NCBI GenBank assembly: GCA_964035545.1
Contig: OZ037770.1
Coordinates: forward strand, 2,636,662 to 2,700,661
DNA from: Bugula neritina
Taxonomy: Eukaryota; Animalia; Bryozoa
Length of the DNA stretch: 64,000 nucleotides
Direction of reading: 5' to 3'
Shown: positions 2,526-63,688 of the stretch, in pieces
Layout: the number at the start of each line of letters is the position of its first letter
Position numbering within the stretch: the first letter of the stretch is position 1
Position numbers and translations under genes: made by a program
The notes under the pieces: model-generated
The model's database searches: none
Seen by the model: only the letters and a program-made list of their open reading frames with translations
Told to the model about the DNA's origin: nothing

Positions 2526-5500
2526 CTGAATACAAGTGTATTTAGAATATAATTTTATAAGTGTACACACACACACACATGCGCGCGCACGCAAACGCGC
2601 ACACACACGCGCACGCACGCACACACACACACACAATAAATTAATTATCTGCAAATTTGGTTATCTATAACTAAAAGGAGCCTGTGGAAGCTAGAATAAT
2701 CTAGTGAAGTTTGAGGGTTTAGTGTCCAAAAGGGAACTGCTAAAACTTATGTTCATTAGCTGACACATTCACCTTGTCAGTATTTGAGAAGAGTTGCTTT
2801 ATCCGTGGGTTGGTTGTTGGCTTTAGTTCAAGTTGTATTAATTTCAGGCCTTCCTTGTTCTCTTTATCAGGGTACAGATTGTCATCATCTTCCGAGAGAT
2901 CACTCAGATCATCATCTGATTTGTCTGCAGTCATATGATTGGGGTGATTAATGCCAGCATTTGAAACCATAGACAACATATCTTGCTTATTCATCAGAAG
3001 AAGCAATAAATTTTTTTAAAAAGGCACAATTAAACATATTTTGAAAATAAATGTATAGCCAAATAATTGCAAAGCCTATATAATTTTTCCAATACTGTGG
3101 GTTCAAAAAGTAAGTTCTGTCCTGAAAGTTTACCGTTTGATTTGTTCTGTTCACTTCGGAGTTTGAGCTCAGAAAGGAATTTTTTAAATTTATTTGTTTC
3201 TGTTTCAGACAAAGTCTCACCTAAAAAATACAGACAGCATTAGTTATACTATATCTTGATGAAAGTCATTAGACTAATATGTGATAAAAAAGAGCTATGT
3301 TTGTAAGTTGAAATTTTATAAATTAAAATGAAAATGCAATAAAGTGCTGTGTAGCTTTCTAATTTCCATCTATTATTAAAATTCATTAATGCAGGACAAA
3401 GAATTAGATATGATTTGTTACTGTAAGACTATTTAAAATATATTATCAAGAAATTTAGAAGTGAATCATATGTGTAAACATACATGGGTGAAGTAGAGCA
3501 CTGGGTATCTCTTCACCATTACACAGTATCTTCGAAGATCCATGGCACTTGTCGACATCGGATGGCAGTCGGCTTTTCAAGGAACGAAAACACCATTTAG
3601 GATGCAGAAGCTTTTCAGGGCAAGAAACCCCTAGTATGAGACAGTGAGCACAAATGCAGGCGGTGACTGGTCGACTAGCAGTCCAAGTTTCCATCACATG
3701 TCTGAGGATGTTGTTGTTGGCTAAAATGAGCTTCTCCCACATCCTGGAAATGTGAGCAGAATCAGATGACACATAGAGTAAGACTCTTCTAGAATCATAA
3801 TCATGTGTCAGCTGTGTGTAAATTTCATCTTGATAGACATTAACTCCATTTCCCTTCACCTCCATCGTAGCAAACTCGTCAGAAAATAGTTCTAACAAAC
3901 CAACTGTCATTTGATGGTACACATGCCGTGGTAATGCAAGACCATTGAATTGTGTTTCGGTATGTAACAGCAGATCCTTGGGTGATGTGTATGAAACACT
4001 GTAATGATCCTTAGCAAACTGTGGAATGATGAAGTACGGCTCATGAACATTTCTTTCCAGAGGGCCGTACAACAAACGGAATGTTTTAAGCAAGCAAACG
4101 GCAATTTCAACATCATGAGAGCTTTTGAATAAAGTTTCCTCTGCAATCAAATATGTTAAAAGAGATATCATCATCAAGCCTGTTTTTTCGAAGTGATTCA
4201 CAAATTCTCCAAACTCTTGTTTCTCCAGTCTCAACTCTTCACTAGAAAAACATGGTTTAAAATGATCAACTCGACTCTTCCAGATGTCTGGGTCATGATG
4301 ATACAAAACACAGAGTAGTTTGGTAACTTCTGTGATCTTGTGAAATATGTATGGTTTAAGTGCTTCAATATTTTTATACCACAAAACTTTGCCGCAGTCA
4401 TGCATGTATGTGAGAATGGTATCTAGCTGGTCTGGCTCAACTTCAATGCCTGCTTTTCTCAGTTCAGGCAAAATAAACCAAAAAGAGCTAAAGGCTCCAG
4501 GCAAAGACGAAACTTTTTCATTCACTTTCTCCCAGATCAGTGGCAAAGGCTGAACAAAGTGCTGACTACTTTTAAGAAGTGAGCTCTTTATCGAATCAAA
4601 CTCAGCATACTGGTCTTCCTTTCCAATTTGATAAGTATCTTTACTGGCAAACACCTTTCCACTTGATGAATTAAAATGCTGAATCTTTGCAAATTCTCGA
4701 TCTAAACTTTTTTCTTCATCAAGAACTTCTTTGCACAGCTGTTCAAATATCTCAAGAAAACTATCTTGAAGCTGCTGAAATTTTTCGCTCTGAAACTTAT
4801 CTTTGTGTGTGAAGACTAGTTTAGGTGGGCCAAGAGATGGATGGGTAAGATAGAGGTGGGACATGAAGTTAAAAGCCAACTTTCTGACAGCCTCTTTGTT
4901 TGTAAACTTATTTGAAATCTGATCAAACTGCTCCATGTTGACTACAATTACCGGTACGCAATTTTGTCTCAGTGTTAAATGGTATGTGATATGGTAGACC
5001 TCTTGGCCTCCCATATCTATGAGACGAAGAGTAGTACCATTCACCTCTACCTCTTCCACATTAAACACTTTTGTGGTTTCATCCTGTTTTGCATTAGGAC
5101 TTCTGTCAGTCAGAACTCTTTTCCTGTCACTGCTTTGTAATGTTTGGATTAAACTGGTTTTTCCTGCCATTGTGTTCCCCAAAACAACTATTGTAGCAAA
5201 TGGCAAGTTTTTACCAGCACCTTTAGCCAAGTCTTTGTAGTATTGCTGAACAGAATTTAATCCTCTTCTGCATATTTCTAGCGGTGGAGATGTAAGATCA
5301 AAACATCCACCTGTATCGAGAGACTGAAGTTGTGTTAGCTGTAGTATGTCAGGGTTCAAGAATGTCATGGAGCTGTTGTAGGATATATTCAGTGTGTGCA
5401 GATTACTCATTGTGCACACTGAAGGTGGGAGACTGGTGAAGTTATTAAATGATATGTTTAGTCTCTGTAACTTCTGTAGTCTCTGTATTCTAATAACATA

Positions 5501-8500
5501 TAATATTTCTATTATCAGCATAAACCAGAGGTAAGTGATCTACTATATGTCATGAGCAAACAATGATAATACACCAATACCTATACACAGAGCAGTGATA
5601 AGCAACAGTGACTTGTACAAAGCATGCTGACATAGTAGGCTACAGTAAATAAATGTCATTTTAAAAATGTGCCTAATAGTACAGAATATGGGCATTGTTG
5701 CAATCGTCATATTATTATATGTTTAAAATTTAAAATAATATTATTTATAAGAATTCATAGAAAATTATGAATCTATTCAGTTCCAATACTAAATACGTAC
5801 TGTATATACTGCCATTTAAACATAACATAATACTATACATCACACAAAAATATAGTTATATATGTACACCAGTTAGTATCTACATGTTCATACTGATCTT
5901 CTACTATAGATGTAATCAAAAAGACAAAAGTAATTTTATACTGCGGGACAGACAACATTATAAGCATGTGATATAAAACAGTTATTATCTCATAAAAGAA
6001 GCGTTGTGCTGATTTTGTAAAATGTGTTCAGGCGATTTCAGATGAAACTATAAATTTCTCTCCAACAATAATATATTTATTAAAACGATTTTATAGTGAT
6101 ATGAGAGTATATTATTATACTCTCATATCACTATAAAATCGTTTTAATAAATATTCACTAAAATCTTGTAAACATAATTTTATAAATTATACAAGCTAAC
6201 TTGCTATCGTGAGCTACAAGTTAATGAAATGCCATTATCATGTTCCATATCTTGAAAGGCAGCCTATCTTGGTTCTAAATATAAATAAATGTTAAAAAGA
6301 ATGTATTGTATTACCAGAAACAAAATACATTTTGACTGTTAATGCTGAGAGTGGAAACAGACAGCTGTTGTAGCGAGTGCCAAACACCCAAACAATATTC
6401 GAAATTGTAATTATACTTTTTTGTTCTTTCCTCCTAGCCTTGCAATATATTGTTAGGTTATTAATTTTCTAAAACAAAGCTAAAGTAGATGCTCAGTTCT
6501 GTGACTATCTTGATGTGTATTATATAAACCAGAGCAAAGACATGCAGCAACAAATCTTCCGACATCTTTTAGCCTACTTTTGTAACATAATTTTAATAAT
6601 AATAATTTGATACAATCAAAAATAATACTAATCCTGCATGTATACTGAGTCATGAATATTTGAAACGCTAGCACAAAAGAATATTAAAAAGAAACAGCCT
6701 GCATGTGGCAGTGATAATGCTGTGAAGAATTTACAGGTTTTTGAAAAGCAAGAATTGGTACAAAACCAGAGCAGAATCAGTACTGGATAATGAAATAGTA
6801 AAACTCTTGTGAGATTTCAACATACACACCGACAGAGTGAAGCTATAGGAGGCTGGATATAGTGACAGTTAACAAGCGTTACATTGCTAAAGTAATGCTC
6901 ATGGAACTAGTCCTCTCTTGTGACCATAGAGCAAAAGAGAGAAAATCAGAGTAGATAGGAAAATATTATAGGATTCAGCAATAGAAACAAAATTATTTTG
7001 GAAAACATCAAGAAAGGTCATTGCTATTAAAATTGGGGCCCTTGGAGCTGCATACAAGACTCTAGATTGGATGGTACTACTTGGAGTAGCTGAGAATAAA
7101 TACTCCATAATTCAGCAGACAACATTACTTATAGGATCAGCTCACATCTTGAGAAAAATAGAACTAAGCTGAGGATAGAAGGTTATGCCAGCAAAAATAG
7201 CTATATATACATAGCAATAATAATAATAATAATGATATAGTCCTATTATACACAACTTTTATAAATGTACGTCAGTTAACAGCCGATACCGCTGAAAACT
7301 TAGTCTAAAACAAAAAAGATTTACCTAACCTATTATTGCGTGTAAACTCTAAGTACCTAAAAACTTTCACTTTTAATTTTATTAAAGGCTCGATGACTTT
7401 CATTGGGTGCCATCCCAGATAGACGCTTCCCAGTAAGACCATACGCTAAATTTTTTACTTGGACGCTTTCCCCTTATAGAGGCTTTCCAGCTAAACACTA
7501 TTTATTTATCTCGGTACAAAAGATATTGTATGTGCTATTTATTTAAATATTATTGAAATACATGCATAATGTAATGGATTCTCATCCTCGATTAGTTCCG
7601 AAATAACTGCGTGTATTGTGATTACTGTTGCGTATCGTTTTGGATGCTGTAATTGTAGTAAGCTAGCTTGATAATGCCCAATTTTTGTGATTACTGTTAA
7701 AGCTTTCAACATAATGTAATTTTGCTAAAATACGCATTCCGGAGTTATTTTCTTTTGTGTTGCTATTTTATCGTTTAATACTGATACTGGAAATTTGTGG
7801 TTCGAGTTTCGGCTCTGCCGAATTTTGGAGCTGCTGAATTTCGGACCACAAAAAATCTTTTGTCTACATGTTCTTTTGTTCTCTGTGTATAAAAGCAGGC
7901 GAGTTCCAGTGTAGATTCAGTCTACTACTGGAGCTCGCCTGGGTAAGTCGGAGTTATTTCTGCTACAATAAAACACTTTTTGAACTTTGCTACCTCAACC
8001 TCTCTTGTTCTGCACTAAGTTACATTCAACCCACAAGTTTATCACATTGGTGGCAGCGGTGGGATTCTGAATACTAGTGTAAGAAGAACAAGATGGCTCC
8101 AGGGGGTGAGGAGGCGACCCCTGGAGCAGCAGCAACACCAACCCTCACTGTGGAGGCTTTGGTGACAGCCCTCCGAGAGTTGCAGGAGACAGGGCAGGCG
8201 CCACCTGGTGACAGGTACCGCCTCAGTCCCCTCGATTTTCGGAGGTGACAGGGATGTGGAGCAATTCATCCGGGAGTTCCAGGACGTGGCCACCATCGCT
8301 GAATGGCCAGCTCGGGCGCGCGTCCTCTAACTCAGTGCCTGTTTGACAGGCTGGGCCAAGAGTTTTGCTCTGGGGCCCGATGAAGCACACATCTTGCGTG
8401 CCCTAAGGACCAGGTTTGGCATGACGTCAGAGGAAGCGTCTGATCGCCTACAGGTCATGAGAAGGAACAAGAGAACATCATTGGAGGACCACGCCAATGA

Positions 8501-11500
8501 GGTGGAACGCTTGGCCCAGGCTGCTTTCAGCCATGCCACTGGACCGGAGAGACAGCGCTTGGTGTACAACGCGTTTTTCCAGAGCATAAATCATCCTGAC
8601 CTCCAACGCTATTGAATGGCTGCCAAGGTGGGCAGCCTGGACGAAGCTCTGGAAACGGGTAAAGCCTATTTCCAGGTGGAGGAGCTTTAAGGGCCAAGGT
8701 TCACCGCCCGCCAGGTAGTCGAGGATGAGACCACCATGCCTGCTAAACCTCAAGTAGCGGCGGCAGCAACTGAGTCATCGGAGCAGACGCAGCTCACCAT
8801 GTTGATAGACATGGTGAAGGGCCTGCAGGCTACGGTGACTGAGTTACAGCGAGGCCAGATGGGTAGGCGGGCTCCCAGAGTACGGGACGACCCTACCCGC
8901 CCCTTTCAGCTTACCTGCTGGGAGTGCGGAGCACCAGGACACGTGCGGAGACACTGTCCGAAAGGCAATCTGCCTTTAAACAACCAAGGCTCACGATAAC
9001 TTCCGCCGACCGTGGGCCCCAAGCCAATCCCATCCAGGACAGGGCTCAGAGGAAGACTGAGAGGACCTCGATGGAGCTTGCTGATACTAAGTGGAAGGCG
9101 CCACGGAGATCTCGGAGACTGAAAGGTCTGCTCGATCCTCCTGCCATGCAACTCAAAGCCCGGATGAAGTCAACAGACTCAGGATGGCAGACACCTCGGA
9201 GATCTCGGAGACCGCAAGGTCTACCCGATCCTGCGGCCTGGCCACTCCAGAACCGGTTCGTGGGGTTGCCCGAAGAGGTTGTGGAGGAGGACTCAGCTTA
9301 TTCACAAGAGTACCCCAAGCTGCCCTCCCGACCTCAGAAAACCCCCGTCGTCTCTAGGACGAAGAGGAGGCCCGCTGTGCGGACCCAAGTTGTGTCTCCC
9401 CCAGAGACTAACCGCTCCAGGAGCACCCAGCCGTACGAAAGCAGCTACTTCCTGCCCGGAAAAATTTCAGGCAAAGCTGCCACATTCCTACTGGATACTG
9501 GGTGCACTACAAACCAGCTGAGTAGGCGTCTCTTTGACACTCTTGGTGCCCGAGAGCGAGCAAGCCTGGAGCCGTACGAAGATGCACATGGTACGGACGG
9601 ATCATGTATTCCTTTTTACGGCGTTATTATGCTACCTGGACGCGTCCGTGATCAAGTGATTAACGAGACGTTCATAGTCAGCCAGCTGAAGGAGAACGCC
9701 ATTCTGGGATTGCCGTTTCTGGAGAAACACCAGTGCCGCATGGATTTCCAGAAGTCAGTGGTGGTGATGGCTGGAAGAGACCTTGTCTGTGTGGACAAGT
9801 TCGGCAGGCCCTTGGTGGGCGGAGTCCAGGTAGTGCGGGACTGCACGGTTCCGGGGATATTACAGGCAACTCTCCGCTGCAGAGTCAACTGTAAGGAGAT
9901 CGCCAGCCTGGGAGTGGTTGAGGGAACGCACGGAGCGATCCGACTAGCAAACAGCCTGAATCGGCTAGACTGTCGGCAAGAGCTCCTCGTGCAGTGCATC
10001 AACCCCTTCACGAAACCTGTCCAATTATCGGCTGGAGCACTAGTGGGGAAGTACCACTCTATCCAGGAGGCAGATGTGGGGCTGGCACTAGAAGCAGTGG
10101 CCGACACCCAGGGAAACCCCCCCCGCACTAGCCGAGGAACAGTCCCGGAGCATGTGGCTGACCTATACGGTGGAGCGAGTGGAAACTGTAAGAGTAGTAC
10201 TGAACGCCAAGCACTGGCTCAACTACTCACGGAGTACAGTGATGTCTTCAGTCATGGCGGTGGAGACATGGGGCTGAATAAGGTTATCTCTCACGAGATA
10301 CCCCTGGCAGCCGGCACCACTCCCATCAGGCAGCCCACCCGACCTCTAGGCCCAGAGAAGGAGAAGGAGGTGAGCCGGTAGGTGGAAGATCTTCTTGATC
10401 GGGATCTGATTGAGCCTGCCCACGGTGCGTGGAGCTCTCCAGTAGTCCTGGTCAAGAAGAATGATGGTAGCTGGAGATTCTGCGTAGATTACCGCATACT
10501 CAACAGCGTTACCATCTAGGACGCCTACCCTCTCCTACGGATAAATGAGTCTCTGGATACCCTCGCGGGTAGCAAGTACTTTAGTACTTTGGATCTGCTT
10601 AGCTGGTACTGGCAAGTGCCCCTCAGTCCTGATGCTCAGGACAAAGCAGCATTTATTACTCAGGACGAGCTCTGGAAGTGGAAAGTACTGCCATTTAGAC
10701 TAACGTCCGCCCCGGCAACTTTCCAACGACTCATGGAGCAGGTCCTCAGTGGATTACACTGGAAGACCCTCCTAATTTATCTGGACGATGTCATTGTAAT
10801 CTCCCCAGACTTTTCGACTCATGTCAGTCGTCTGCAGGAAGTCTTTGACCGTCTCCGGGCAGCTGGACTGAAGCTGAAGCCCTCCAAGTGTGCTTTCCTG
10901 CAGCCGGAAGTCACGTACCTAGGCTATGTGGCTGGCTGTGACAGGGTCGCTACCGACCCGGAGAAGGTACAGGCTGTGAAGGAGTGGGCTGTCCCCCGTG
11001 ACCTCCCTTAGTTGCGAGCATTCCTGGGCCTAGTAGGGTACTACCGGCAGTACATACCTGGCTTTGCAGGAGTGGCTCAGCCGTTAAATCGGCTGACCGC
11101 AAAGGGGGTCCGGTGGCAGTGGACACAGGAGGAGCAGCAGGCATTCGACCACCTCAAGCAACGGCTAATGGAGGCGCCAATTCTGGCGTACCCTGATCCA
11201 GCCAAGGAGTACATCCTGGACACCAACGCAAGCGACCACAATGTGGGAGCTGTTCTGTCTCAGGTCCAGGGTGGAAGCGAGGTGGTTGTGGCTTATAACA
11301 GCAAGACTCTCGCGGCCGCCGAGAAGAACTACTGCACTACTAGGAAGGAGCTCCTAGCAGTAGTCAAGGCGGTCAAGCACTTTCGGCCATATCTGTAGGG
11401 GAGAATGTTCCGATTGCGAACAGACCATGCATCACTGATATGGCTGTGTAAACGTGTGGAGCCTTCGAGCCAGGTAGCTCGTTGGCTGGAGATTCTTGCT

Positions 11501-14500
11501 GAGTTCTCCTACCGGATAGAGCACCGTGCTGGCCGGAAGCACGGGAATGCCGACGGCATGACTTGTTGGCCGGTAGAGGACTGCAAGCAATGCCTGCATA
11601 TAGAGAGACAGAACGGGGGACCCGCTCGCCTTGACGTAAAAACAGAATTAGGGGAGGGCGCCGTCTATCGGTGGGAGCATGGCCATCTTCGGACCGAAAC
11701 CCACTCTGACGACGTCCAGGTACTTTGTGCCAACCCCACTCTGTATCAGCACGTCAAGGAACTGTGCCGACTCCAGGAGACGCTACCCGGCGTAATAGTG
11801 GACATATTTCGAGCCAAGAAGGAGGGCCGATGACCTAGCGAGGAACAGCAGCGGCAGGGAGACGTTGAGTTCCAACTCCTCTGTCATCGCTGGAATTCCC
11901 TCAAAGTTAGTCCTGAAGGCCTCCTGATGATGACGCTAGCAGCAGACAACCGTCAGCAGGAGAGAGACCGCGTCATCTGTCCATGCGCTCTCCGACGGGA
12001 ACTGATTTGGGACACCCATAAGCAGGCTCATTCAGGAGTCAGTCGAGTCATTAGGTGTCTGCAGCTGCATTGGTACTGGCCCGGAATGACTCAGGACATA
12101 CGACTGCGGGTACGGTAGTGCGAGGTCTGCCAAGCTAGTAAGCATGACCGCCCCACGGAAACCACTGGTTGACGCCGGCTGTACGCTGGTCGATCGTGGC
12201 AAGTAGTGGCGGTGGACCTCGTTGGACCTATGCCGTTATCCGCCAGAGGGAACACCTGGATACTGGTGCTCACGGACCACTTGACCCGGTGGGCAAATGC
12301 TCTGGCCATTCCAGACGCATCGGCTCCCACGGTGGCCCGGGCTCTGGACCAAAACGTATTCTTCTACCTCGGTTTACTCGAGCAGATACATATAGACCAG
12401 GGCACCCAGTTCCAGTCTCAGCTCATGGGAGACCTCTGCCGGATATGGGGGGTGAACCAGAGTCGGACCACTCCATATCACCCGCAAGGGAACGGAGTCG
12501 TCGAGCGGAACAACAGGATGTTGGGTGACGCCCTCAGGAGCCTACTCCTCGGTTGAGGTCAGGAAGAATGGGAGGTGGCGCTGCCACAAATCATGCGGGC
12601 TTACCGCAGCACACCACGCTCCACTACACAGGAGACTCCAAACTTCTTGATGGTAGGACGGGGGACGCGGGTTCCGGAACACCTGACATACCACGTTCCC
12701 GCCCCCGAGTCGCCAGTACATGAGTACATGGGGAGACTGATAGAGATCATGGGTAAAGCCCATGACGCACTGCAGGCCCAGCAATGGCAGATCCATACAG
12801 AAGACTTAGAAGAGCCTCCATTGTACCAGGTGGGAGACTGGGTCTGGATGGTGAGCTACTGTAGGCGACGCGGACAGTCGGCTAAACTTTAGCCCAAGTT
12901 CGTGAGTCCCTACTGCGTGGTGGAGGTGCTGCGCAACCACACATACCGTGTGGAGCGCTCTGGACAGGTTTCAGTTTAGAGCGAGCAGCGCCTGAAACCA
13001 TACTATGCCAGCCCAGACGCGGTGGGTCAGGCTCCACCCCTCTTGGAGCCCAACCGCCAGCCCAACCATCAGGGGAGGGCCACCCAACCCCGAGAGGTGG
13101 AAATTGTCATCCGAAGGGAGGCAGAGCAAGAGCAGGCTGCCCTGCTGGAACAGTTGGAACAGCAACAAAGGCAGGAGCAGCAGCAACAGCAGCAGCAGGC
13201 CCCAGGGCCACCACCCTTCTCGGAGGAAGACAGTCCTACCCGTGTTACAAGTGAAGGCGGGGACCCCCTACTGTGGTAACGGGAGAGCAACTGGCACCAC
13301 CAGCGCCTGCACAGCCAGAAAGGAGCCAGAGAGCTAGGAAACTACCCAGATATCTGGCGGATTGCCAAGTGGGACACATGGAAATGTCCCCACGGAGGAG
13401 TGGTACACCCAGTACGGGTAAAAACTTTGAGCCTCAGTTGCAAAACAGCCCTGGCAGTACAGGACTTCTCCAAAAGCAACAACCCGCAGACCAGCACAGT
13501 CACCTGGACAACAGGTGCCCAGCTCTTTCGGGTAATGTTGGCCGAGTTAGGTGGCGATACCCCATACCTATGACTGACTTGGACCCCCCTCCAGAAAAGG
13601 AAGATGAGGCCACGACCCTACTACCCGCCCAGCTGATTAGAGATGGCGCTACCGCAGCCACCACCCAGCCTCTACAGGTAGCGTTGGCAAGACTGGGCAA
13701 GGAGCCTGGAGCACCAGGCAGCCAGATAGAAGAGAAGACCCAGCTGACCTACTCACACTTGCTCCGTCACCGGCAGAGTATGGCACCTCCTTACCGAGAG
13801 TGTGTCCTAGATAGTGCAATCCAGGCCTGGTCCAAGATCCTTGACCGATGTACAGAAGAGATAGAGAGCCTGGTGCACTATCTCCAATGACTGAACCGGA
13901 CAACTAGGAGCCACCGGCATTAGCCCCCTGGATTGTATCTATTGTGGGTGCTAATACGATTGTTATATCATTGTGACACGCGTGATTAATCATAATACTT
14001 TTCTGTTAACCACATATTTTCCATTTTTGTGTTTTTTTTTTGTGACCTGTTTTGTACAAACACCTTGTTTCTGTTATCGAAAAGGGGATGCTTTTCGATG
14101 CGGGAGAATGTAATGGATTCTCATCCTCTATTAGTTCCGAAATAACTGCGTGTATTGTGATTACTGTTGCGTATCGTTTTGAATGCTGTAATTGCAGTAA
14201 GCTAGCTTGCTAATGCCCAATTATTGTGATTACTGTTAAAGCTTTCAACATAATGTAATTTTGCTAAAATACGCATTCCGGAGTTATTTTCTTTTGTGTT
14301 GCTATTTTATCGTTTTGCATTAATACTGATACTTGAAATTTGTGGTCCGAGTTTCGGCTCTGCCGAATTTTGGACCACAAAAGATCTTTTGTCTACATGT
14401 TCTTTTGTTCTCTGTGTATAAGAGCAGGCGAGTTCCAGTGTAGATTCAGTCTACTACTGAAGCTCGCCTGGTTAAGTCATAGTTATTTCTGCTACAATAA

Positions 14501-17500
14501 AACATTTTCGAACTCTACTACCTCAACCTCTTTTGTTCTGCACTAAGTTACATTCAACCCACAAGTTTATCACAATATTTAAATAAACTTGGATCAATTG
14601 TTTGCTATTTAGCACATGAATAAGTTCCTTTGGTCCGCATTAACTTATTAATTTTGCATATTCTATAGCTATTTCTTAGTGTCTGAAAAAAAAATTTTTT
14701 TTAATAAGTTTTCATTAAAAATAATGTCTTTTATTAATGTATTACCGTTTTTTGCCCCACAAAAATGGGGGGGGGGAAAGTGGGCTATTATTCCAGGTAC
14801 TTTATATTAGCCATTATAGTTGTTAGCATATTAGCTATTTAGCAATCAATACACCGGTTATATACATTATTATGGTACCAAAAGAAAAAATAGCGTCTAA
14901 CTGGGAAACATCTATCTGAGATGAAACCTTTCATAGGAATCTATATAAGCCAATTGCCAAAATAACAGCATTCCAGTTATATCCTATAATTATCTGGTAT
15001 TTTGCTTCAAAATGACAGGAACTCACTGAATTTGCTTGCAATATTGCACACAATACCATCTTTTTAGTAATCAGTTCTACCCAAAACCTATCAACAATTT
15101 GTCTCTGGGGGAACTGGCATGGTGAACACGTTACATGAAGTTATGGACCTATGATATAATGATCTTTGAAATTGGCTGAAATTTCTCGACAAAGTACTTC
15201 TTGACAATACTTCTATAAGCAGTAAGGATTCTACAGGTTCACAAAAAAGGAGGTATAAATATCATATTGCAGTTTTGGTTGTGTTGAATATTTTACTGTA
15301 ACATACAAGTTAACAAATGTTTTAAATGGTAAGTTTATTGTAAAACACAAACCTCTTAGGTAGAGTAGATAATTTGCAGTTTTGCATATTCAACTCTTTA
15401 AGTGATGTGAGTGATGACACAACTTCTGGTACTTCGTTGAGAGGATTCCTTCCTATGTCTAGTTTCTCCAACTGAGTCAGCTGACGTAAACTGTAATATA
15501 AAATATGTTAAATATGTATATAGTCTACCTCATCATAGTATTGTATAATGTATATAATGTGTTTAACCAGGTATACAACTACAAAAATATAGCAATAAAA
15601 TTACCGTAGCATATGGTACGAGCAAAGAAAAAGCACGAGGGTAATACTGTGATAATATATAATAAAAGACGCAGAACGTGTTCTATGATTTACTACACAG
15701 CTATATTATATACAGAGTATAATTACATGGGTTAAGATAACTACCATGTAGTTATGAAAGATTATAGAGCAACTATATTATAAATATTTTACTTCTTTAT
15801 AAATTTTTTATTCAACTTATCATAAAAATTGGCTACTTATTCTAAGTAAAGATATAAGAGGGTATAATTTTTCACCTATCCCAGCTTTGTTCTGTTCGGG
15901 TAGCTGGGATGATAGTGTATTCTAATGGATTAGAACTATTAATTACTCAGTAAATACTAGTAAACTACAAATGGCGGCTTATGATAGGTAGAAACTATTT
16001 TAACATAATTATATAACATACTGTACTCTGCTTGTGTAGTCAATAATATATAAACACATGCGTGCAATAAATTTATTACCACAAGACAGATTCAATGCAA
16101 ATGAAAAAGACTAATGAGCAGTTTTTAGTTACTGCATGCATACTGGTAAAATACAAATGGCTGCTCTATTATTGATTACAATTTCTTTTCTTGATACAGT
16201 ACGTATTACATAATGGCATACCCTAAACGCAATGTAATTTCTAGGATAGATTGAAGTATGATATGTATACTTTCAGAAAATCAATTTATGTTTTTAACAT
16301 AGTAGTATATATTGGCATAAATTATTACTACAATTGATGAATATATAAATATATAACCGAGTTGATTTTTCAAACAACACAAAATGTGTGACGCACAAAC
16401 CTCTCTGGCAGATTAGATAAGTCACAGTCCCACATTTTCAACTCTTTAAGTGATGTGAGTGATGACACAACTTCTGGTACTGTGTTGAGAGGATTGCCTC
16501 CTATGCTTAGTTTCTCCAACTGAGTCAGCTGACATAAACTGTAATATATAAAGTATGTGATACAAGATATGGTCAGCTACTGCTATATTCAAAGAATGGA
16601 CACTTAGCAAGCAACGATTCAATAAGCTTTAGATACTAGCTAAAGATACAAACAGTTCTATCCCAGATAGATGCTATTTGTTATTGTGGTACCATGATAA
16701 CATATATAACTGGTGTATTGATTGTTAAATAGCTGATATGCTTATAATAGCTATATAATAGCTATTATGAAGTATCTGGAATAATAGCCTACGTTTCATG
16801 GATTTGCGTGGGGAAAAAACAGTAATATATTAACAATAGACATTATTTTTAATGAATACTCATTAACTAAATATTTCCTCAAACAAAAATAAGTATAGAA
16901 TATGCAAAATTGATAAGTTAATGCAGATCAAAGGAGTTTGATTATAAATATAGCAGATAATCCATCCAAGTTTATTTAAATATACATTTATTTCAATAAT
17001 ATTCAAATAAATTGCACATAAAATATATATTGTACCAAAATAAATAAATAGCATCTAAGTGGGAAGCGTCTAAGTGGGATGACACCCTACAAACTGCTTC
17101 TTTAGTAATTACAAAGTCTTTGTTTGCATAAAAATAAATAATGCCGTACCTTAGAATTATATTGTTTTCAAGATATAGCAAGCTGTTGAATAATTTCAAA
17201 AAAATTATGTTTATATTTCAACTGCTATATAGTATAATAACAAAGACATACTTTAACACTGCTTGGTAAGATCTGTGAATTAATGAATGTTTGAAACAAT
17301 ACAAAACCTGTGACGCACAAACCTCTCAGGAAGATTAGATAATTTACATTTCCACATATTCAACTCTTTAAGTGATGTGAGTGATGACACAACTTCTGGT
17401 ACTGTGTTGATAGGATTGTCTCCTATGTATAGGTTCTCTAACTGAGTCAGCTGACATAAACTGTATTATAATGAAGTGTGTGATATATGCAATTTATTGT

Positions 17501-20500
17501 ATCATAACAATACATTCTGCAAAATTTGCGATGTACAATATTCAAGAACTAAATTCAATGCACAGGTAAAATTCTCCAGAATGTAATAACGTGGTAATAT
17601 TTTTATTAATTTGCAGCGTCTGAGACAGTTAATTACCCTGAATATCACGTGCATGATGTCATTAGAGCAGTTACAATTAAGAAATTATATTATATATAGA
17701 TATAATATATTTAGGAGGTTGTAGATATTGAGAGTGGAGAGAGCTTTACTTTAATTACACGCGGTTAACCTGTTAGTTTAGTATAGATGAGACCTCACTT
17801 CATATTGTTATGATTTTCAGAATTAGGGTTGATATGCAATCCGGAGAGTCTATTTATTTGCTAGAGAACTTCACCAGGATAAGTCGAATAAATACGAGTA
17901 TATTTTACACACAAGAATACATCACAAAAACTATACAAATACATTCAGCAAATCTACACATCTATATCATTCAGCACTCTATCTTCGACTAACTAACAGC
18001 GGGAAGACTAACTACTGCTACTAACTATCAGTGTCGCTAATTGGCTGTCCATTGTTCCGGGTCAATTACGTGACCCTATGCTATAGTAGTGGGGAAAATA
18101 ACATTTCCCCGTATTACGCTGCTGGTAGCTCCACAAGCCACCACACCGCCCCCACCAGCAGAAAGCTCTCTTTCTGATACAAAAAAAAATATTTTACAAT
18201 TAACCACATACATCAGTAGACCAAAAGAAAAAGACATAACATATATATATATATATATAGATACACAATAACAGACATAATCATTATAACGGCATGTCAC
18301 ATACAATTGGCTAGCTATAGAAAGAGGATACCGGCTAGCTGTAGTGTTGGACAAGAGGTCGAGCTGTCAAGCATTTACATGATAGTCTTGGGCCTCCAAG
18401 AGGGTGAGGCTTGCGGATCATTCCGGGCAGAAGAGCCAGAGTCAGTGTTTGGCAAGCCGATGTTTGGCTTGGCGGGCACGTAGCTTTCTTTTAATCCGGC
18501 CGACAGAGCCTTTTAACTGATAAAGACCCGTTGTGGTACTAAGTAGATCTGGGGCTAACTGGGTGAACTCAGCCTGCACGTGAAGGAGACGCTCCTCTAC
18601 AATGGCCAGGCGAGTAGGGTCTGGGGACGGCGTCCGCCTTCGACGAGGGGGGGAACCTGGAGATTGGGTCCGCCTGCTAGTTGAAGGGCGGGGAGACTTA
18701 CTCTTCTTCTTCAGGGTAGGCAAACTCTTCGGGGGTATACACAATCTGAGGGCGGTCGGACACCAATGGGGATTGTTGCCTGGCGTAATCTAACACATGT
18801 TGAAAGCCGGAGGTCAGGACGGCCAATAACATTGCCTTCTTCACTAAGGGTCGTATTAGAGTCAGGAATTCCGGGTAGAGCTTAGCATCTACTACGTAAT
18901 TCTCTTCGGGGAAACGGCCCGCCGCTCGGTGTCTAGTGACGGAATAGGGGTAGACATCATTATATCCGCAGGGGCAGACTGTGAGTAAGAAGTGGGCGTT
19001 GACATGTAGCCTCATGGAGCGGTGAGAGGCACACTCTTCGTCACAAATCTGGCACTGTTTCCTTCCTTTGGGTCCCCAGGCTGTCTCTATTTGCTTCTCC
19101 GTCTCCGGCGACACCCACCACCAGCGGCGGCGCAGTGGCTCAGGCCGGTTGCCATTGGTGTACTCCTCGTGATGCGGAGCGGGAGGTGCTCTATCCCGTA
19201 CCCTGGTTGTAACGGTCGAGTGTAACCTGAAAGAGTTTCAACAGCGTTAGTATAATACACTGCAGTGTTGTCGGCTTGGACAGCCTGGCAACTTCTCAGT
19301 CAGTTAACACTCGTAGAGATTTATGGTAGTGAGTAGTTGGATAGAACACGTATTGCAATGAGATTGTAAAATCTCTAAGTCAAACTGAATTCCTACCACA
19401 GTAGTTCACTAACCTATCTCCAGCTCAATTGACTCAGGTGAGTCGGAGCTGAGTGATGCAATCTAGTTTCCATATCAAGATATAGTTAACTCACCCCACG
19501 ATCCGTTGTCGTACGACATACTGAACTTGTGAAATGGTTTGAACTATTGACTAGGAACACGTCTGCTCTTGACTGCATCAGCATAAGAAAAGATCGAGCA
19601 ACGTGGTTGGGGTGGGTGACTAAGACTTTGCGCACCCAGCGGATGAATTTTGTTTCTAAATCCGCCGATACAAAAGTTGATATTTCCGTGGTGTTGACAA
19701 CTCCCACAATTGCTCGATACTTTTCCCGTACGGTTCCCCGCTAGACTTTCATACGCGCCGCTTTTAATGCAGTCACATACGAAGTCCTTTAAATATGATG
19801 GGGGTTGCCTCGTACGTTGTCCCCGCTCTAGGGGAGGTGACGCACTCGCCGGTGTACTAGTAGGGGCCTCTGGCGGCGTCTCTACTTCACTATTAGTGGT
19901 CACTTCTTCCTGTTCTCTGGATGGAGCCCCTCCCTCCGTGGGGGTTTGCACTTCCAGAACCGGCTCGGTCTCCGGAAGTGATGGAACCAGACTTGGCGCA
20001 GGCGGTGGCGGACGCGCTTCTGCAGGCAAAAGTGGTCGCTCATCCCTCACCAAATCTTCTGCCCGCGGAATGACCACTTTGTACTCAGGTCCATGCCGCC
20101 GTCGCCCGCGCATTGTTGTCTGCCTCCTGGGCTCCAACAACGGGGGGCTTCTCTCACTGCGTCAGGGCTAGCCCAATACGGCTTCAAGCGAGCCTCATTC
20201 TGGGTAGACACCTGTCCTGAGCGCTCAATCTTGTAGGTATGGGTGGGCATAGCCTCGAGTATTACGTAGGGTCCCACGAACTTAGGCTGTAACTTAGCCG
20301 CCTGTCCGCGACGCCTACGGTAATTGACCATCCACACCCGATCTCCTGTCTGGTAGAGGGGTGGTTCCTCGAAATCCTCATGCCCAACCTGCCACTGCTT
20401 TTCTTGCGGTATTTTGTGTGTGACCCTCATCCGTTCCACTAGTTCACTGGCATACTCGTGGACCGAGCAGTCTTGCTCTGGAACATGGTAGGTAAGATGG

Positions 20501-23500
20501 TCAGAGACACGAGTCTCTCTCCCGAGCATTGGGGTCTCACCAGTACTGGTGTGTGGGGTGCTACGGTATGCGCGCATGATTTGCGGCAACACCGTGTCCC
20601 ATTCCTACTGACTGCGTCCGAGGAGTAGACTCCGGAGCGCATCACCTAGCATCCTGTTATTGTGCTCCACCACCCCGTTACCTTGGGGATGGTAAGGGGT
20701 GGTCCTGCTCTGATTTACTCCCCAGAGGCGGCAAAGGTCGCTCATCAGTTGAGACTGAAACTGAGCGCCGTGATCAGAGTGTATCTGTTCGGGGAGCCCG
20801 AAGTAACAGAATACATGTTGGTCTAGCGCCCTGGCCACTGTCAGGGCTGACGCATCTGGGATAGCCAGAGCGTCTGCCCACCTCGTAAAGTGGTCGGTCA
20901 ATACTAAGATCCAACTATTGCTTCTGGGGGTTAGGGGCATGGGTCCGACCAGGTCGACAGCTACTACTTGCCACGGCCTTCCAGCATATAACCTCCGCTG
21001 TCTCGCTTCACTAGGGGGACGGCCATGCTTGCTGGCCTGGCAGATTTCACACTGTTTTACCCTGAGCCGGACATCTCGCCCCATTTTGGGCAAATACCAC
21101 CGGAGTTGTAATTTAGAGATCACTCTCATGACTCCTGCGTCAGCCTGTTTGTGAGTGTCCCAGATTAACTCAAAGCGTATGGCACTAGGGCAAACCACCC
21201 TCTTCTTCTCTGGGTGTCTGCCGTTGGCAGCTAGAGAAATGGTCAGCAGACCATCCTGCCCGATCCTCAGCGAGTCCCAACGCTGGCAGAATAGCCGAAA
21301 AGCGGCACATCCCTGCCGTATTTGCTCCTCGCTGGGTCGTCGCCGTTCCTTTTTGGCCCGATATATGTCTGCCACTCCCCCAGGCAGCTCTTCCTGGAGC
21401 TTCTTCAGCTCCCAGACATTATCGGCCGATACAGGATTTGCGCGGAGGTTTTGTACAACCTCCGGGGACTCGTCAACCTTCTGCTTGAGTTGACCCTAGT
21501 CCCAGTCAAACTGCGCTCCCTGGTGAGCCAGTGTCTCCAATTCACATCGCGGGGGACCTCCGTCCCTCCTCTCGATATTGAGACACTGTTTGCAACCTCC
21601 ATCAGGTCGGCGGCTCAAACCGTCCGCATTGCTGTGTCTCTTGCCCGGTCGATGTTCTATCCGGTACGAGAACTCAGCTAGGATTTCGAGCCACCGGGCG
21701 ACCTGACTGGAAGGCTCTGCTCTCTTGCACAACCAGATCAGAGAGGCATGATCCGTACGCAGCCGGAACTTTCTGCCGTATAGGTATGGTCTGAAGTGCT
21801 TCACTGACTTGATTACTGCCAACAGCTCCTTGTGGGTAGTGCAGTAATTTCGTTCAGTGGGTGAAAGAGACTTGCTGTAGTAGGCTACTACTACCTCCCA
21901 GCCTTCTTGCACTTGAGACAGCACAGCACCAACGTTCTGGTCAATGGTGTCAGTGTCGAGGTTGTACTCCAGAGTAGGATCTGGGTAGGCCAAGATGGGT
22001 GCCGTCAGTAGGCAACCTTTGAGGCGGTCGAACGCTCCTTATTCGACCGGGGTCCACTGCCACGTCACTCCCTTTGCGGTGAGCCGGTTCAACGGCTGTG
22101 CTATGCTCGCAAAGTCTGGTATGTATTGTCTGTAATACCCTATCAGCCCCAAGAAAGCCCGAAGTCCGGTCAATTCTTGGAGGGTGACCCAGTCTTCTAT
22201 CGCCCGTACCTTTTCAGGATCCGTTGCCACGCCGTTTCGACCGACAACGTGCTCCAGGTACTTGACCTCCGGCTGCAATAGAGCGCACTTGGAAGGTTTG
22301 AGCTTCAGACCAACACCTCGGAGTCTCTCGAAAACCTCCCGCAGAGGACTGAAATGTGTCTCGAAGTCTGGGGAGATCGCGATGACATCATCAAGGTAGA
22401 TCAGCAGTGTCTTCTAATGGAGCCCGCTGAGGACTTGCTCCATCAGCCTCTGGAAGGTGGCTGGGGCGGAAGTTAACCCGAAAGGCAGCACCTTCCACTT
22501 CCACAAACCATCCCGTGTGATAAACGCCGCCTTCTCCTGGGCGTCGGGACTCAGAGGAACTTGCCAGTAACCGCTCAACAAGTCTAACGTACTGAAGTAC
22601 TTGCTGCCGGCTAGGGCGTCCAATGACTCGTCAATACGAGGTAGAGGGTAGGCGTCCTGTATGGTTACGCTATTGAGCTTGCGGCAATCCACACAGAACC
22701 GCCAACTGCCGTCTTTCTTCCGGACAAGTACGACCGGCGAGCTTCACACACTGTGGGCGGGCTCGATGAGGCCGCGGTCCAGAAGATCCCGGACTTGTCA
22801 GCTAACCTCCTTTTCCTTCTCCGGCCCCAGCCTGCATGTGGGTTGCCGAATAGGGACCGTCCCTGCAGTCAGCGGTATTTCGTGTTTGACAGCTCCAGTC
22901 AGTCCCACGTCTTGATCTCCGCTGCTGAACACATCACCGTAGTCGCGTAGCAACTTCGCCATGGCTTGGCGTTCCTCGTTGCTTGCGCAGCCACCACAGG
23001 CTGTCTCATATAACTCCTGGATGTGTGTTGGGACCGCTCCTCGCCCCTGAGTAGGGCGTTGAGGGGGTGCCTTCGTCGCATCTCCCAGCGACGGGCCCGC
23101 GTCTTCTTCCTGGACAGAGTGGAACCGGCCCAGCATAGACCCAGCTGGGAGCTTGATGGGCTCAGTGAAGGGATTGACACATTGCACTAAGATCTCTCCT
23201 CGTTCAATCAGTTGGTTTAAACTGCTGGCGAGTTGGATCCTTTCGTGCGCACCTTCGACTACCCCGAGTCCAGAGATCCGGCTATTGTTCACCCTGCAGT
23301 GAATGGTAGCACGGGAGCGGCCTGGCACGATACAGTTTCGTACCAACTGCACGCCTCCCACCAAGGGGTGGCCGAACTTGTCGACGCATGCGAGTGCTCG
23401 CCCGGACATTGCCATCGCAGATTTACTAAAATCGATGTGACATCCGTGCCGTTTCAGGAATGGCATTCCAAGGATGGCGTCCTCCTTGAGCTGACTGACG

Positions 23501-26328
23501 ATAAACGTCTCTTGGATCGTTTGATCACGGACGCGTCATGTCAGCTCAATTATACCGTAGAAGGGAAGGCACGACCCGTCAGTCAGGGTGCCATACTCCC
23601 CCTCGTACGGTTCCATCTTGCCCCTGACCCTAGCGCTGAGGGTGTCAAAGAGTTGGCGACTTATGAGGTTCGTGGTACAGCTCGAATCAATTAGGAAAGT
23701 GACAGCTTTGCCTTCTAATTTGCCGGGCAAGAAATAGCTGTTTCCATGGGGCTGCACCTGAACTGTCTCTTCGTGCCTTGCTCTCGCAGGGAGTACCTCC
23801 CTCGCTCTAGGTCGCGAAGGAGGTCGCTTGGGATGGTGGTAGATTGGCCTTGGAGGTGAGCAGGCTAAGTTTTCAGCTACCTTTGCTGGCTCCCATCCAG
23901 ATTCTTGTGGAGGGGCATAGAGAAGTCAGCGGCGTGGTCGGAGCCTCTTGCTGGTCCGTCGTGGCTGTCGCCACTCTCGGTTGTCAGCACGTGGTACCCG
24001 TCTGGGTGACCTACGTTTCTTCTTCCCTGAGGGGTTCATCGCCGGCCCGCAGGAGGTGGGAACATCTGCGGGCCGCGGTAGTTTAACCCCGAAGTTAGGA
24101 AGGGACAGCACCTGCGGAAATGTCTTTGGTTTCCGCATTCCCAGCAAAAACTGACCGTTTCCCCCGGTGGCGGCGCCGGTGGTCGTACTGGCTCAGAGTC
24201 GGTACCTACTGGGGTTTGGGGTGTCAGTGTTGCTATCAGTTTGGCCAGCATGTCGGTCAGTTGAGTGACCTTCGATGCGGCCGTTAACTGAGCCACGGCA
24301 GCCGTCGTGGAGGGCTCCGCCTCTCGCTCCGCTGCCGTGTTCGCGCGGAGTACCTCCACCTGACGGGAGTTCCTGCAACTTTTATGCATCTGGTTTGCCA
24401 GGAGATAAGCTTCTCCCTCCGCCAGAGCATCTTCAACGGTGGTGACTCCCCTACCTAGAAACTGGTGGTGGAGACCCAAGTCGTTGACAGATTGTATAAA
24501 GGCGTCAAGAGTATACCTCTCAGGGTTAGCTTGGAGCAGATCGCTATACGCAATCTGTGCCAGTTTCATGACCGTGGCGGCATGTTCTTGCAGCGGGGTG
24601 TGAGGATCACGCCGCAGCCTTTGTAGTCGGGCCCTGGCATCTGTAGCAGAGATGCCGAAGCGGGCCCGCAGAAAAGCAAAGATACTATCGATGTCTGCAC
24701 CTAGCCCATAGGGCTTAGCCTTGTCTATCAATGACATTCTGAGCTTCAGCAGGGCCACCCGAGGGGGCCACTGGGCGACGTCCATTACGTCACTAAACTC
24801 TTAGATGAATTGCTCCACCTCTTCTTCGCCCGTGAAGGTGGGCGCTTTTAACCGGTAGCGATCCTTGTTCAGCTCTCGAGGAACCCTTCGCTCTTCTACC
24901 ACATGATTCACAGGCATAGCATCGTTTTTACGCTCACCTTCTGCTGCCGGTGATGCATTCCAGCGTTTACAGTCTCCATCGTGGATGTACACTATCCCAC
25001 TGCTGCCACCACTGTTATGATTTTCAGAATTTGGGTTGATATGCAATCCAGAGGGTCTATTTATTTGCTACAGAACTTCACCAGGATAAGTCGAGTGAAT
25101 ACGAGTATATTTTACACACAAGAATACATCACAAAAACTATACAAATACATTCAGCAATTTTACACATTTATATCATTCAGCACTCTATCTTCGACTAAC
25201 TAACAGCGGGAAGACTAACTACTGCTACTAACTATCAGTGTCGCTAATTGGCTGTCCATTGTTCCGGGTCAATTACGTGACCCTATGCTATAGTAGTGGG
25301 GAAAATAACATTTCCCTGTATTACGCTGCTGGTAGCTCCACGAGCCACCACAATATTGCTATGTAGGTTGATGTCATAATTTTGTAATTAGGTGCATTTA
25401 AACATATGAAATATAATAGCGTTCTGTAAAATTTTGAAGACTTTATGGTACTTTTGTATTCAGCTACATAAAACATGCTTTAAGTGATGATATCAAGTAA
25501 CAGCATACACATTGTGACACTGTTTTCAATTCCTACATCTGATTCAGCTGGTATATAGATACAATGCTTTACGTATTATACTATTAGTTATACACTGTAT
25601 GATTATATTATGTGTAAAAATATGTTTTCGCATTCAATTAGTCAAATATTTTGTAAACAAGAAATAATGTCATCTACCCTCTATACAGTTGCTGTATTAT
25701 AAACACTCACTTGTTCAGACTTGCTCTGTCAGTCAGGCTAGAAACATGTAGATACAGGGCTTTACCGGCAATCTCTCCAATGTTGTCGGGAATTTCCCCT
25801 TCCAGTTTGAGATGTGTAATGTCATAACTCCCAACTTCACGTTTCACCTCAGCAGTAGTATATGACTTGGTACCAGCAAAAATTGTATCTAACCAGCCTA
25901 CAGCAGGCTGTCCAGAATGTCTAAACCAAACACTCATATTCTCTGTAACATTATACAGTGTGATTATTACACAGTGCTAGCAGGTGATGTCTCTCATTCT
26001 GATCTACTGATTGAATATATTTATTATCTGCATGCTGTGTATCAGTCAGTCAACTATCACAGCAATAAAGAACTGAATTACACATTTTATTATAGCAGCT
26101 GTAGGTTTAACAAAGTAAAAACTTCGAGTTATAAAATAAAATGAATAAAATCAGCAATTTCCTAAAGTCATATATACCTGATTTAATATCTCTAGAATTA
26201 TGCTGATTGTGTTTCAGTATAAAAACATCTCAAATCTCCTTTTTATGTATTACATACAATGATGTTAAAATAATGTAATATATTTTGAGCGTTTGCAATA
26301 TTTCAAAACACTCACCACCAGTTGCCAT
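322..26328 (-). CDS. LRR-Roc-COR (ROCO, MFHAS1/MASL1-like) protein fused to a C-terminal caspase-family (C14) domain, ~1260 aa, 13 exons
   Basis: Exons 5'->3': 26316-26328 (MATG), 25711-25942, 17323-17460, 16401-16538, 15353-15490, 3484-5489, 3134-3220, 2773-2924 (alternative in-phase acceptor near 2981), 2355-2525, 1661-1883, 1281-1511, 917-1020, 322-471 (TAA). All introns are GT-AG with compatible phases (1,2,2,2,2,1,1,0,0,1,1,0); total 3783 nt with no internal stop. Confidence 0.8.
2564..2634. repeat. (CA)/(CG) alternating purine-pyrimidine microsatellite in a caspase-region intron
   Basis: acacac...gcgcgcgcac...acacac. Confidence 0.9.
3484..5489 (-). CDS. Large exon: last LRRs + LRR C-cap + Roc GTPase + COR + Cys-rich tail
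   Basis: [16 protein letters not shown]-type LRRs; [12 protein letters not shown] cap; P-loop GNTMAGKTS; G3 DMGGQEVY; G4 THKD; COR PLPLIW...[13 protein letters not shown]; YFIIPQF; CICAHC. Acceptor ttattag at 5490, donor gtatgt at 3483. Confidence 0.92.
6073..6154. repeat. Perfect inverted repeat, 39-bp arms with 4-nt loop
   Basis: atatttattaaaacgattttatagtgatatgagagtata-ttat-tatactctcatatcactataaaatcgttttaataaatat. Confidence 0.95.
6700..7233 (+). mobile_element. 5'-truncated, decayed non-LTR retrotransposon 3' end (restriction-like endonuclease, R4/Dong-like) ending near a (TAA)n tract
   Basis: Frameshifted remnants [49 protein letters not shown] match the RLE consensus WDFxIQTD..RPDIV..IGALG..GTAxILRK; taataataataat at ~7218-7233. 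Confidence 0.65.
7570..8046 (+). repeat. 5' LTR of Gypsy-1
   Basis: Direct repeat of 14109-14574; followed by the PBS. Confidence 0.95.
8975..9018 (+). other. -1 programmed ribosomal frameshift signal (gag-pol) of Gypsy-1
   Basis: T TTA AAC slippery heptamer, 6-nt spacer, stem GGCTCACG/CGTGGGCC; the pol ORF is in the -1 frame relative to gag. Confidence 0.8.
14109..14574 (+). repeat. 3' LTR of Gypsy-1
   Basis: Direct repeat of 7570-8046. Confidence 0.95.
15353..15490 (-). CDS. LRR cassette exon C (138 nt, two 23-aa LRRs, phase 2-2)
   Basis: [45 protein letters not shown]; acceptor ttacag, donor gtttgt. Confidence 0.88.
16401..16538 (-). CDS. LRR cassette exon B (138 nt, phase 2-2)
   Basis: [45 protein letters not shown]; acceptor ttacag, donor gtttgt. 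Confidence 0.88.
16655..17087. mobile_element. MITE copy 2 between LRR exons A and B, inverted relative to copy 1
   Basis: Ends tcccagatagatgc / gcgtctaagtgggatgacaccc; flanked by tacaaac(ag/tg) direct repeats. Confidence 0.7.
17323..17460 (-). CDS. LRR cassette exon A (138 nt, phase 2-2)
   Basis: [45 protein letters not shown]; acceptor atacag, donor gtttgt. Confidence 0.88.
17806..18145 (-). repeat. 3' LTR of Gypsy-2
   Basis: Direct repeat of 25013-25352. Confidence 0.95.
18442..19519 (-). pseudogene. Candidate accessory gene of Gypsy-2: C2H2 zinc finger + SP/R-rich segment + coiled coil, possibly spliced
   Basis: [21 protein letters not shown] and VCPCG..TRH in ORF 18698-19114; frameshifted continuation 18442-18744; ATG exon 19495-19519 with GTGAGT donor and ctttcag acceptor at 19227. 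Confidence 0.55.
25013..25352 (-). repeat. 5' LTR of Gypsy-2
   Basis: Adjacent to the PBS; followed by ATAT. Confidence 0.95.
25711..25942 (-). CDS. N-terminal exon of the ROCO-caspase gene (divergent LRR N-cap)
   Basis: Open frame ..[36 protein letters not shown]; acceptor gttacag in phase 1 matches the MATG micro-exon, and donor gtgag in phase 2 matches the LRR exons. Confidence 0.65.
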
Positions 26329-37222: not shown

Positions 37223-37769
<547 letters not shown>

Positions 37770-38509
37770 AGTTGTCCTTTCGATAATAATAAACCTATAC
37801 AAAGTATCTACACATGACTTTTGCCTCACTGCTATAGAAACTATTAATGCTTGTTAAACCAGAAAGAATAAACTGAATGAAAGAAGTTCTTTATAAAAAA
37901 ATGCTTGGGAACAAAAAGTATGTATTTGTTATATTCATATACTGATAATATAAGCCACACATTACATTATGTTTCTATATATACAATTTCATCTGCTTTC
38001 ACTGATTGCATTTATCAGCCTCCTTTACATTGTACAGCTCTAACAATTTTCATTTGTATAGTGTGCAGTAATAAGAATTCCATGATTTTATTTTATAGAC
38101 AGTATAATATGATGCAATTCATATAGTTTAACTTTATGTTGGCATATACAAGGTATTCACATTATAATATAATATAATATAATATAATATAATATAATAT
38201 ACATAGACACCTCACAATATTATAGTCATCTATTTGTTATAGTGATATGCACAAAATATTTATGTAGACTGTTAACCACTAGCTTAATTTATACTACTTT
38301 CTGATACACAGCTTATTATGTTTAATGCATAATAAAAGAACACAAATATTCTTATATAAAAATCAACAGATATTATATATACCATGCAGTTTAAAGTGCA
38401 TGCCAGCACTATTATGCTTAATTGACATTTTGAAAAAAATATGGTATCATAGGAATTAGAATAGCAAACTATGTCAGTTTATCCAGTTGATGTATTGTGG
38501 GCAGTGTCC

Positions 38510-52837: not shown

Positions 52838-63688
<10,851 letters not shown>

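Follow-up and report, generated by a model that had tools for sequence, protein, structure and literature searches.

Modular LRR cassette exons as the candidate sensor arm of a predicted LRR-Roc-COR-caspase gene family in the bryozoan Bugula neritina

Introduction

Three similar exons in the genome of the cheilostome bryozoan Bugula neritina, each encoding two leucine-rich repeats (LRRs), raise the question of what protein they belong to, how their variety is made and what it might be for. A preliminary description of the 64-kb stretch of DNA analysed here (the window) read them as cassettes of a diversifying receptor repertoire. To our knowledge, almost nothing is known about bryozoan immunity or about self/non-self recognition between colonies, which is why such a repertoire would be of interest. 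The Bugula genome paper contains weak Alr1-like matches only (PMC7576161).

The cassette exons

The cassettes, named in transcript order as in the preliminary description, were read from the sequence as follows.

17323..17460, minus strand: LRR cassette exon A, two 23-aa LRRs, phase 2/2
16401..16538, minus strand: LRR cassette exon B, two 23-aa LRRs, phase 2/2
15353..15490, minus strand: LRR cassette exon C, two 23-aa LRRs, phase 2/2

Re-reading all three bears out their description as symmetric phase-2/2 exons with two 23-aa LRRs apiece; each is 138 nt long and open, with AG..GT borders, and no further cassette was found in the 64-kb window. The differences given for them are exact on recount, at 13 nt between A and B (3 silent, 7 amino acid changes) and 19 nt between B and C (3 silent, 10 amino acid changes), and the splice flanks were indeed duplicated along with the exons, as both acceptor and donor flanks lie within a 184-nt repeat family (D11). 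A core identical in all three exons is present at exon nt 58-102, at a length of 45 nt and not the 44 nt first given. This core is not special: among family cassettes, identical runs of at least 45 nt occur in 8 of 87 adjacent triples and in 5.7% of random triples, and since random triples reach such runs at this rate, we dropped the core as proof of conversion or of a somatic template.

The host gene

Exon-by-exon phase arithmetic places the cassettes in a gene of 13 coding exons on the minus strand, running from 26328 to a stop codon at 322, open throughout with matching phases and encoding about 1279 aa in the order N-terminal cap, three two-LRR cassettes, LRR-Roc-COR exon and caspase. For the first and last two exons, bounds were read from the sequence, the start being a predicted one, and domain searches were run exon by exon. 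The ten exons other than the cassettes are listed below, with the evidence for each.

26316..26328, minus strand: exon 1 coding part (ATG, 13 nt, phase 1), predicted start; sequence reading, region conserved with a paralog at C6:2.545 Mb
25711..25942, minus strand: exon 2, N-terminal cap ahead of the LRRs (232 nt, 76 aa, phase 1 to 2); 64 genome matches, and the Watersipora N-terminus weakly matches the same exon of paralogs
3484..5489, minus strand: large exon with about three LRRs, Roc GTPase and COR (2006 nt, 668 aa, phase 2 to 1); Roc 3e-8, LRR_8, weak COR-A
3134..3220, minus strand: short linker exon after COR; homologous exon in paralogs
2773..2981, minus strand: acidic linker exon into the caspase; exon chain
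2355..2525, minus strand: caspase large subunit, first exon; Peptidase_C14 7e-9
1661..1883, minus strand: caspase large subunit, second exon, with the catalytic His intact (MTHG) and Ser (EASSG) at the position of the catalytic Cys; domain match and motif reading
1281..1511, minus strand: caspase inter-subunit linker and start of small subunit; exon chain
917..1020, minus strand: caspase small subunit exon; tblastn with the Watersipora small subunit, 6e-8
322..471, minus strand: last coding exon, caspase C-terminal strand (LYLFPG) and stop codon; six-frame reading

The Roc domain scores above the Pfam cut-off (Roc, 3.4e-8) and has the G1, G3 and G4 motifs (P-loop, DxxG and T/NKxD-type), so that the window gene is, as judged by this domain, a ROCO. 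The COR region scores weakly in the window protein (COR-A, 0.016) and more firmly in its Watersipora relative (1.6e-5), and it has matches to the COR region of amphioxus ROCOs. Both the large and the small caspase subunits were found. A search of solved structures with the Roc-COR sequence gave no match, and folding Roc-COR-caspase from its sequence alone gave a model too poor to use (pLDDT 33). The receptor reading of the preliminary description stands as regards a repertoire, but it had missed the Roc-COR-caspase region downstream and the absence of the catalytic cysteine from the caspase.

The nearest named protein is a Watersipora subatra "MFHAS1-like" protein (39%); the label "MFHAS1 homolog" on the Watersipora relatives is an automatic RefSeq one. 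Watersipora genes are laid out alike, their phase-2 exons being 141 nt or similar in length, and their RefSeq models hold LRR, Roc-COR and caspase in one chain. AlphaFold models the LxxLxL motif of the Watersipora LRR arm, x positions included, on short beta strands. A second Bugula sample (JGI records) matches at 82%, and because its matching introns are about 89% identical, we take it for a sibling lineage, from another population than that of the window.

A large gene family

The host gene is one of at least 77 paralogs in the genome, counted by Roc-COR exons, and the five genes that were fully read contain 3, 3, 14, 15 and 36 cassettes, each array lying between one N-terminal and one Roc exon. 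Counted genome-wide, as the preliminary description had proposed, a 32-nt cassette core has 335 matches and its reversed control none; the possibility that only three copies exist is thereby excluded. The N-terminal exon has 64 matches, 32 of them in a cluster at C6 2.5-6.3 Mb, and the caspase exon 133. This cluster also holds 30 Roc exons, and a same-strand caspase exon lies downstream of all 30 (paired by position). We read 140 of the at least 335 cassettes, a sample picked in part for resemblance to exon B; of the 140, 137 are intact, and 130 cassettes are distinct. A metagenome scan returned two distant LRR matches and nothing else.

The largest gene read, at C6:6032092-6131204, spreads its 36 cassettes over 90 kb and would encode about 77 LRRs if all were spliced in. 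Its array contains recent 2-kb tandem duplications (95-98% identity) and is partly collinear in the sibling Bugula sample. The same gene has a Ser-form caspase, transposon-like ORFs that interrupt it, and one cassette with a GC donor. Deviant cassettes also include a half cassette at C7:12326555, with an acceptor and no donor, and one with an in-frame 9-nt deletion at C6:4857556.

The effector end of the family varies as well. In two neighbouring paralogs, C6:2528618 and C6:2591816, one of them with a close Roc exon (86%), the caspase exon that follows at a distance of 11-16 kb is divergent (43%), and effector swapping is a possible explanation. At C1:32.79-33.67 Mb, eight arrays contain the cassette core with a single mismatch over its 32 nt, together with divergent caspase exons (42-46%), Roc exons being absent among the scored matches; cassettes may have been transferred between distant subfamilies here. 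Further tandem clusters of caspase exons, at C7 5.03-5.11 and 7.58-7.73 Mb (with weak N-terminal exon matches), C2 30.5 Mb and C9 9.3-9.4 Mb, are probably more distant subfamilies.

Selection on the LRR face

Amino acid diversity among the family cassettes peaks at positions 11, 13, 14, 34, 36, 37 and 39, which are the x positions that the preliminary description had singled out in the LxxLxLxxN/C motif from three exons; the clustering of change there is above chance and holds over the 130 distinct cassettes. At these seven hypervariable codons pN is 0.43, against an overall pS of 0.14, and a codon model gives them an omega of 4.5, although this set was picked after seeing the data. With codon sets predefined from structure, the site-wise dN/dS comparison that had been proposed as a check finds the excess again: across the 130 distinct cassettes, omega is 2.2 for the 10 beta-face codons (2dlnL 21 against omega 1), 1.1 for the convex x positions and 0.35 for buried codons, tree-based values of this kind being inflated by recombination. 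The predefined set lessens the concern over a post hoc choice, as does a comparison with introns. Between best-matching segments of the window species and the sibling Bugula sample, with orthology assigned by best match only, 38 of 147 hypervariable-codon bases differ (26%), as do 423 of 4278 intron bases (10%) and 56 of 819 framework bases (7%).

An excess of amino acid change on the beta-face of the family cassettes is thus observed, and it bears directly on whether a receptor role need be invoked at all. Some of the pattern could arise in an LRR scaffold protein with no receptor role, through neutral tandem duplication, concerted evolution and a relaxed constraint on residues at the surface, since exposed LRR positions tolerate change and the convex x positions do evolve at an omega near 1. 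Relaxation alone, however, cannot make beta-face codons outpace silent sites and, by about 2.6-fold, introns, and the omega above 1 largely refutes a purely neutral account, which we consider highly improbable.

Exchange between cassettes and the origin of their variety

For the same pairs of genes, pS in the cassette framework is 0.08-0.21 against 0.26-0.51 in the Roc exon, and values between genes are about those within genes; splicing constraint on such short exons could account for part of the low cassette pS. Distances calculated from the left and right halves of cassettes are nearly uncoupled (rho 0.14, against 0.58 in an interleaved control), six pairs of cassettes match almost exactly over one half yet differ widely over the other, and some cassettes in different genes are identical, flanks included. 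An incompatibility test restricted to exons reaches significance in the 36-cassette array (p 0.004) but not in smaller arrays. A PHI-like test that included ungapped flanks gave p 0.002, but this value is inflated by indels, and we therefore put weight on the exon-only, half-decoupling and pS results. Silent sites are homogenised and cassettes are mosaic across genes, and together with the size of the family and the beta-face excess, these observations indicate that the variety is made in the germline. They likewise support the earlier proposal of a diversifying receptor repertoire that arises through exon duplication and exchange between copies.

Mosaic cassettes, and hundreds of copies with a near-identical core between hypervariable blocks, are also what one would expect if new sensors were assembled or converted somatically from a cassette pool via the conserved core, in the manner of lamprey variable lymphocyte receptors (VLRs), and Zambounis et al. 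proposed likewise for Ectocarpus (PMC3341825). The germline gene is already complete, however, and the parallel with VLR assembly that the preliminary description drew is not supported, as the core is no more identical than is ordinary in the family and the cassettes are intron-bounded exons bracketed in each gene by about one N-terminal and one Roc exon (32 and 30 on C6). Inverted or detached cassettes were not found in the arrays read, and arrays on C1 also end in their own caspase exons. We regard somatic assembly as almost certainly not the source of the variety. An apparent detached cassette library at C1 32.8-33.1 Mb was rejected, because N-terminal and caspase exons bracket those arrays.

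Could splicing multiply the germline variety?

Combinatorial splicing, whether by skipping as in Ectocarpus ROCOs or by a Dscam-like choice among exons, could add many sensors per gene to those encoded in the germline. Any subset of cassettes preserves the frame, one gene has 36 of them to choose from, and LRR splice variants have been reported in Ectocarpus (PMC11378527). The donor is the non-consensus GTTTGT in 122 of 137 cassettes, against mostly GTAAGT or GTAGGT in Watersipora. At C6:2619661, in a neighbouring paralog, one cassette has a 2-nt deletion that shifts the frame while its splice sites are intact and the Roc exon of the gene is open, as might be expected if that cassette were skipped. 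On the other side, deviant cassettes number just 3 of 140, the Watersipora RefSeq models take in every intact cassette of their loci, and the three cassettes of the window gene would allow at most eight forms. In three arrays, docking/selector pairing did not exceed that in shuffled sequences, with duplex energies within a few kcal and no consistent region, in what was a coarse test of limited regions; with introns of at least 190 nt, there should be no steric exclusion between cassettes. Most cassettes are probably spliced in constitutively and some may be skipped, which leaves combinatorial splicing on top of the germline variety a tentative reading, somewhat doubtful as matters stand.

A caspase with serine in place of cysteine

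The window gene keeps the catalytic His of the caspase and has Ser at the codon for the catalytic Cys, so that the His-Cys dyad (QACxG) is incomplete. The same Ser form occurs in five dispersed genes, including the window gene, and Cys is kept in at least 18 paralogs. With Ser for Cys, the window copy is predicted to be unable to cut and may thus act next to active paralogs much as cFLIP does, as a decoy, a brake or a scaffold.

Loss of the cysteine might instead be a sign of decay, and so might two retroelements that bracket the cassette block, one on each side and both within introns.

17806..25352, minus strand: LTR retrotransposon within the intron that separates exon 2 from cassette A, with 97% identical LTRs, a 4-bp target duplication (ATAT) and an integrase
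7568..14574, plus strand: LTR retrotransposon within the intron that separates cassette C from the Roc exon, with 92% identical LTRs, an aspartyl protease and broken frames

Also in favour of the window copy being a decaying pseudogene, turnover in the family is high, and one other Ser-form gene (C6:3755261) does have a stop in its Roc exon. Against this, all 13 exons of the window gene are open and in phase, and one Ser codon is common to five dispersed genes, the Roc exons of the others being only 73-82% identical to that of the window gene. Between the window gene and another Ser-form gene, moreover, the caspase exon has a pN of 0.05 against a pS of 0.28. The pattern points to a maintained protease-dead subfamily, and decay of the window copy seems unlikely to us. 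Two intronic elements of 7 kb could conceivably silence this copy. A relative of the element at 17806-25352 (84% identical) lies upstream of a paralog at C6:4.97 Mb.

Proposed mechanism

We propose, with a probability of roughly 0.75, that the cassettes form the modular sensor arm of a one-chain intracellular LRR-Roc-COR-caspase receptor diversified in the germline, of which the window copy would be a decoy, brake or scaffold. Germline variety comes from tandem duplication and loss of exons by unequal crossing-over, from exchange between genes and from diversifying selection; because every cassette is phase 2/2, duplication or loss leaves the frame intact. A ligand, perhaps a microbial molecule or a marker of a non-self colony, would dock on the concave LRR face. 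Initiator caspases are activated by induced proximity. By extension from ROCO and caspase biology, Roc-COR dimerisation (dimer model: PMC4104024) would pair two caspase domains and activate them, with cell death or signalling as the outcome. Ser-form copies would take their place next to active paralogs as putative decoys, brakes or scaffolds.

That several genes share the Ser form suggests pairs of activating and decoy genes. If so, bryozoans could have a hitherto undescribed system for immunity or allorecognition, in which one-chain LRR-Roc-COR-caspase receptors come in pairs, an activating Cys form with a Ser decoy, and owe their diverse specificity to germline exchange of cassettes and further to splicing in different combinations, with up to 36 cassettes in a gene, but this fuller picture is speculative and we would bet against it. 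Within the library searched, we found no account of bryozoan ROCO-caspases or of an animal LRR-Roc-COR-caspase. The at least 77 genes with a hypervariable sensor, a switch and a caspase are in any case concrete candidates for a part in bryozoan immunity or colony recognition.

Comparison with known systems

The comparison with brown-algal ROCOs made in the preliminary description turns out to be apt, because the cassette gene itself carries a Roc domain. Like the bryozoan genes, Ectocarpus LRR-ROCOs have an LRR-Roc backbone with a COR region, a predicted one in the bryozoan, and form an expanded family whose LRR exons are symmetric (phase 2), are exchanged inside a gene as well as from gene to gene, and evolve under diversifying selection at the concave face (PMC3341825, PMC11378527). 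They differ in having one LRR per 72-nt exon, against two per 138-nt exon in the bryozoan, and unlike them the bryozoan genes have a caspase fused at the C terminus. Reversed intronic cassettes, a trait of Ectocarpus, were absent from the five fully read bryozoan genes, in which all cassettes lie on the gene strand. Because the bryozoan belongs to an animal lineage, the two exon-shuffled designs are probably convergent.

A similar layout is found in bacterial LRR-AP-GTPase-COR-effector counter-invader proteins, which have fast-evolving LRRs, a Roc-type GTPase with COR, a C-terminal effector that is sometimes a caspase and many paralogs per genome (PMC8195603). The bryozoan gene differs from these in being intron-rich and cassette-diversified and in having a true caspase with large and small subunits; the solved caspases nearest to the Watersipora relative are caspase-3 and CED-3. 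Our reading, if correct, would show an animal that independently reached both the exon-shuffled ROCO design of brown algae and the LRR-GTPase-caspase layout of bacteria. How Roc-COR switches relay ligand binding by LRRs is an open question, for which activation of a fused caspase would be a natural direct read-out.

Among animals, the predicted LRR-Roc-COR core is shared with MFHAS1/MASL1-like ROCOs, including the LRR-Roc-COR-Death and LRR-Roc-GT4 proteins of amphioxus, but these end in Death, in GT4 or in no such domain, and not in a caspase, and their similarity to the bryozoan genes is weak (E about 1e-10). The nearest named matches outside bryozoans are amphioxus proteins, with no vertebrate sequence among the matches examined. 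Human MFHAS1 is single-copy. Another animal fusion of a ROCO to an effector is XP_019614112.1 of Branchiostoma belcheri, an LRR-Roc protein with a GT4 conflict-system effector.

Lamprey VLRs resemble the bryozoan family in that they have LRR cassettes, conserved stretches and variation on the concave face. They are, however, either secreted or anchored in the membrane, and are assembled somatically from intronless cassettes into an incomplete germline gene, whereas the bryozoan genes are complete in the germline, have spliced exons and encode a predicted cytoplasmic GTPase-caspase. By the completeness of its genes and by the coarse docking/selector test in three arrays, the family is neither a VLR nor a Dscam-type array. 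The Ser form, for its part, resembles cFLIP and other pseudocaspases, which have a caspase fold without the catalytic cysteine and occur beside active paralogs; its putative regulatory role would differ from that of cFLIP in that recruitment would be through its own LRR-Roc-COR and not through death-effector domains.

Other features of the window

The rest of the window holds a partial retroelement, an inverted-repeat pair (232 nt, 97% identical, 3.4 kb apart) and several minisatellite arrays with units of 15-33 nt, spread over positions 27700-30200, 31715-35625, 37100-37860, 52830-53510, 54800-56660 and 61209-61729.
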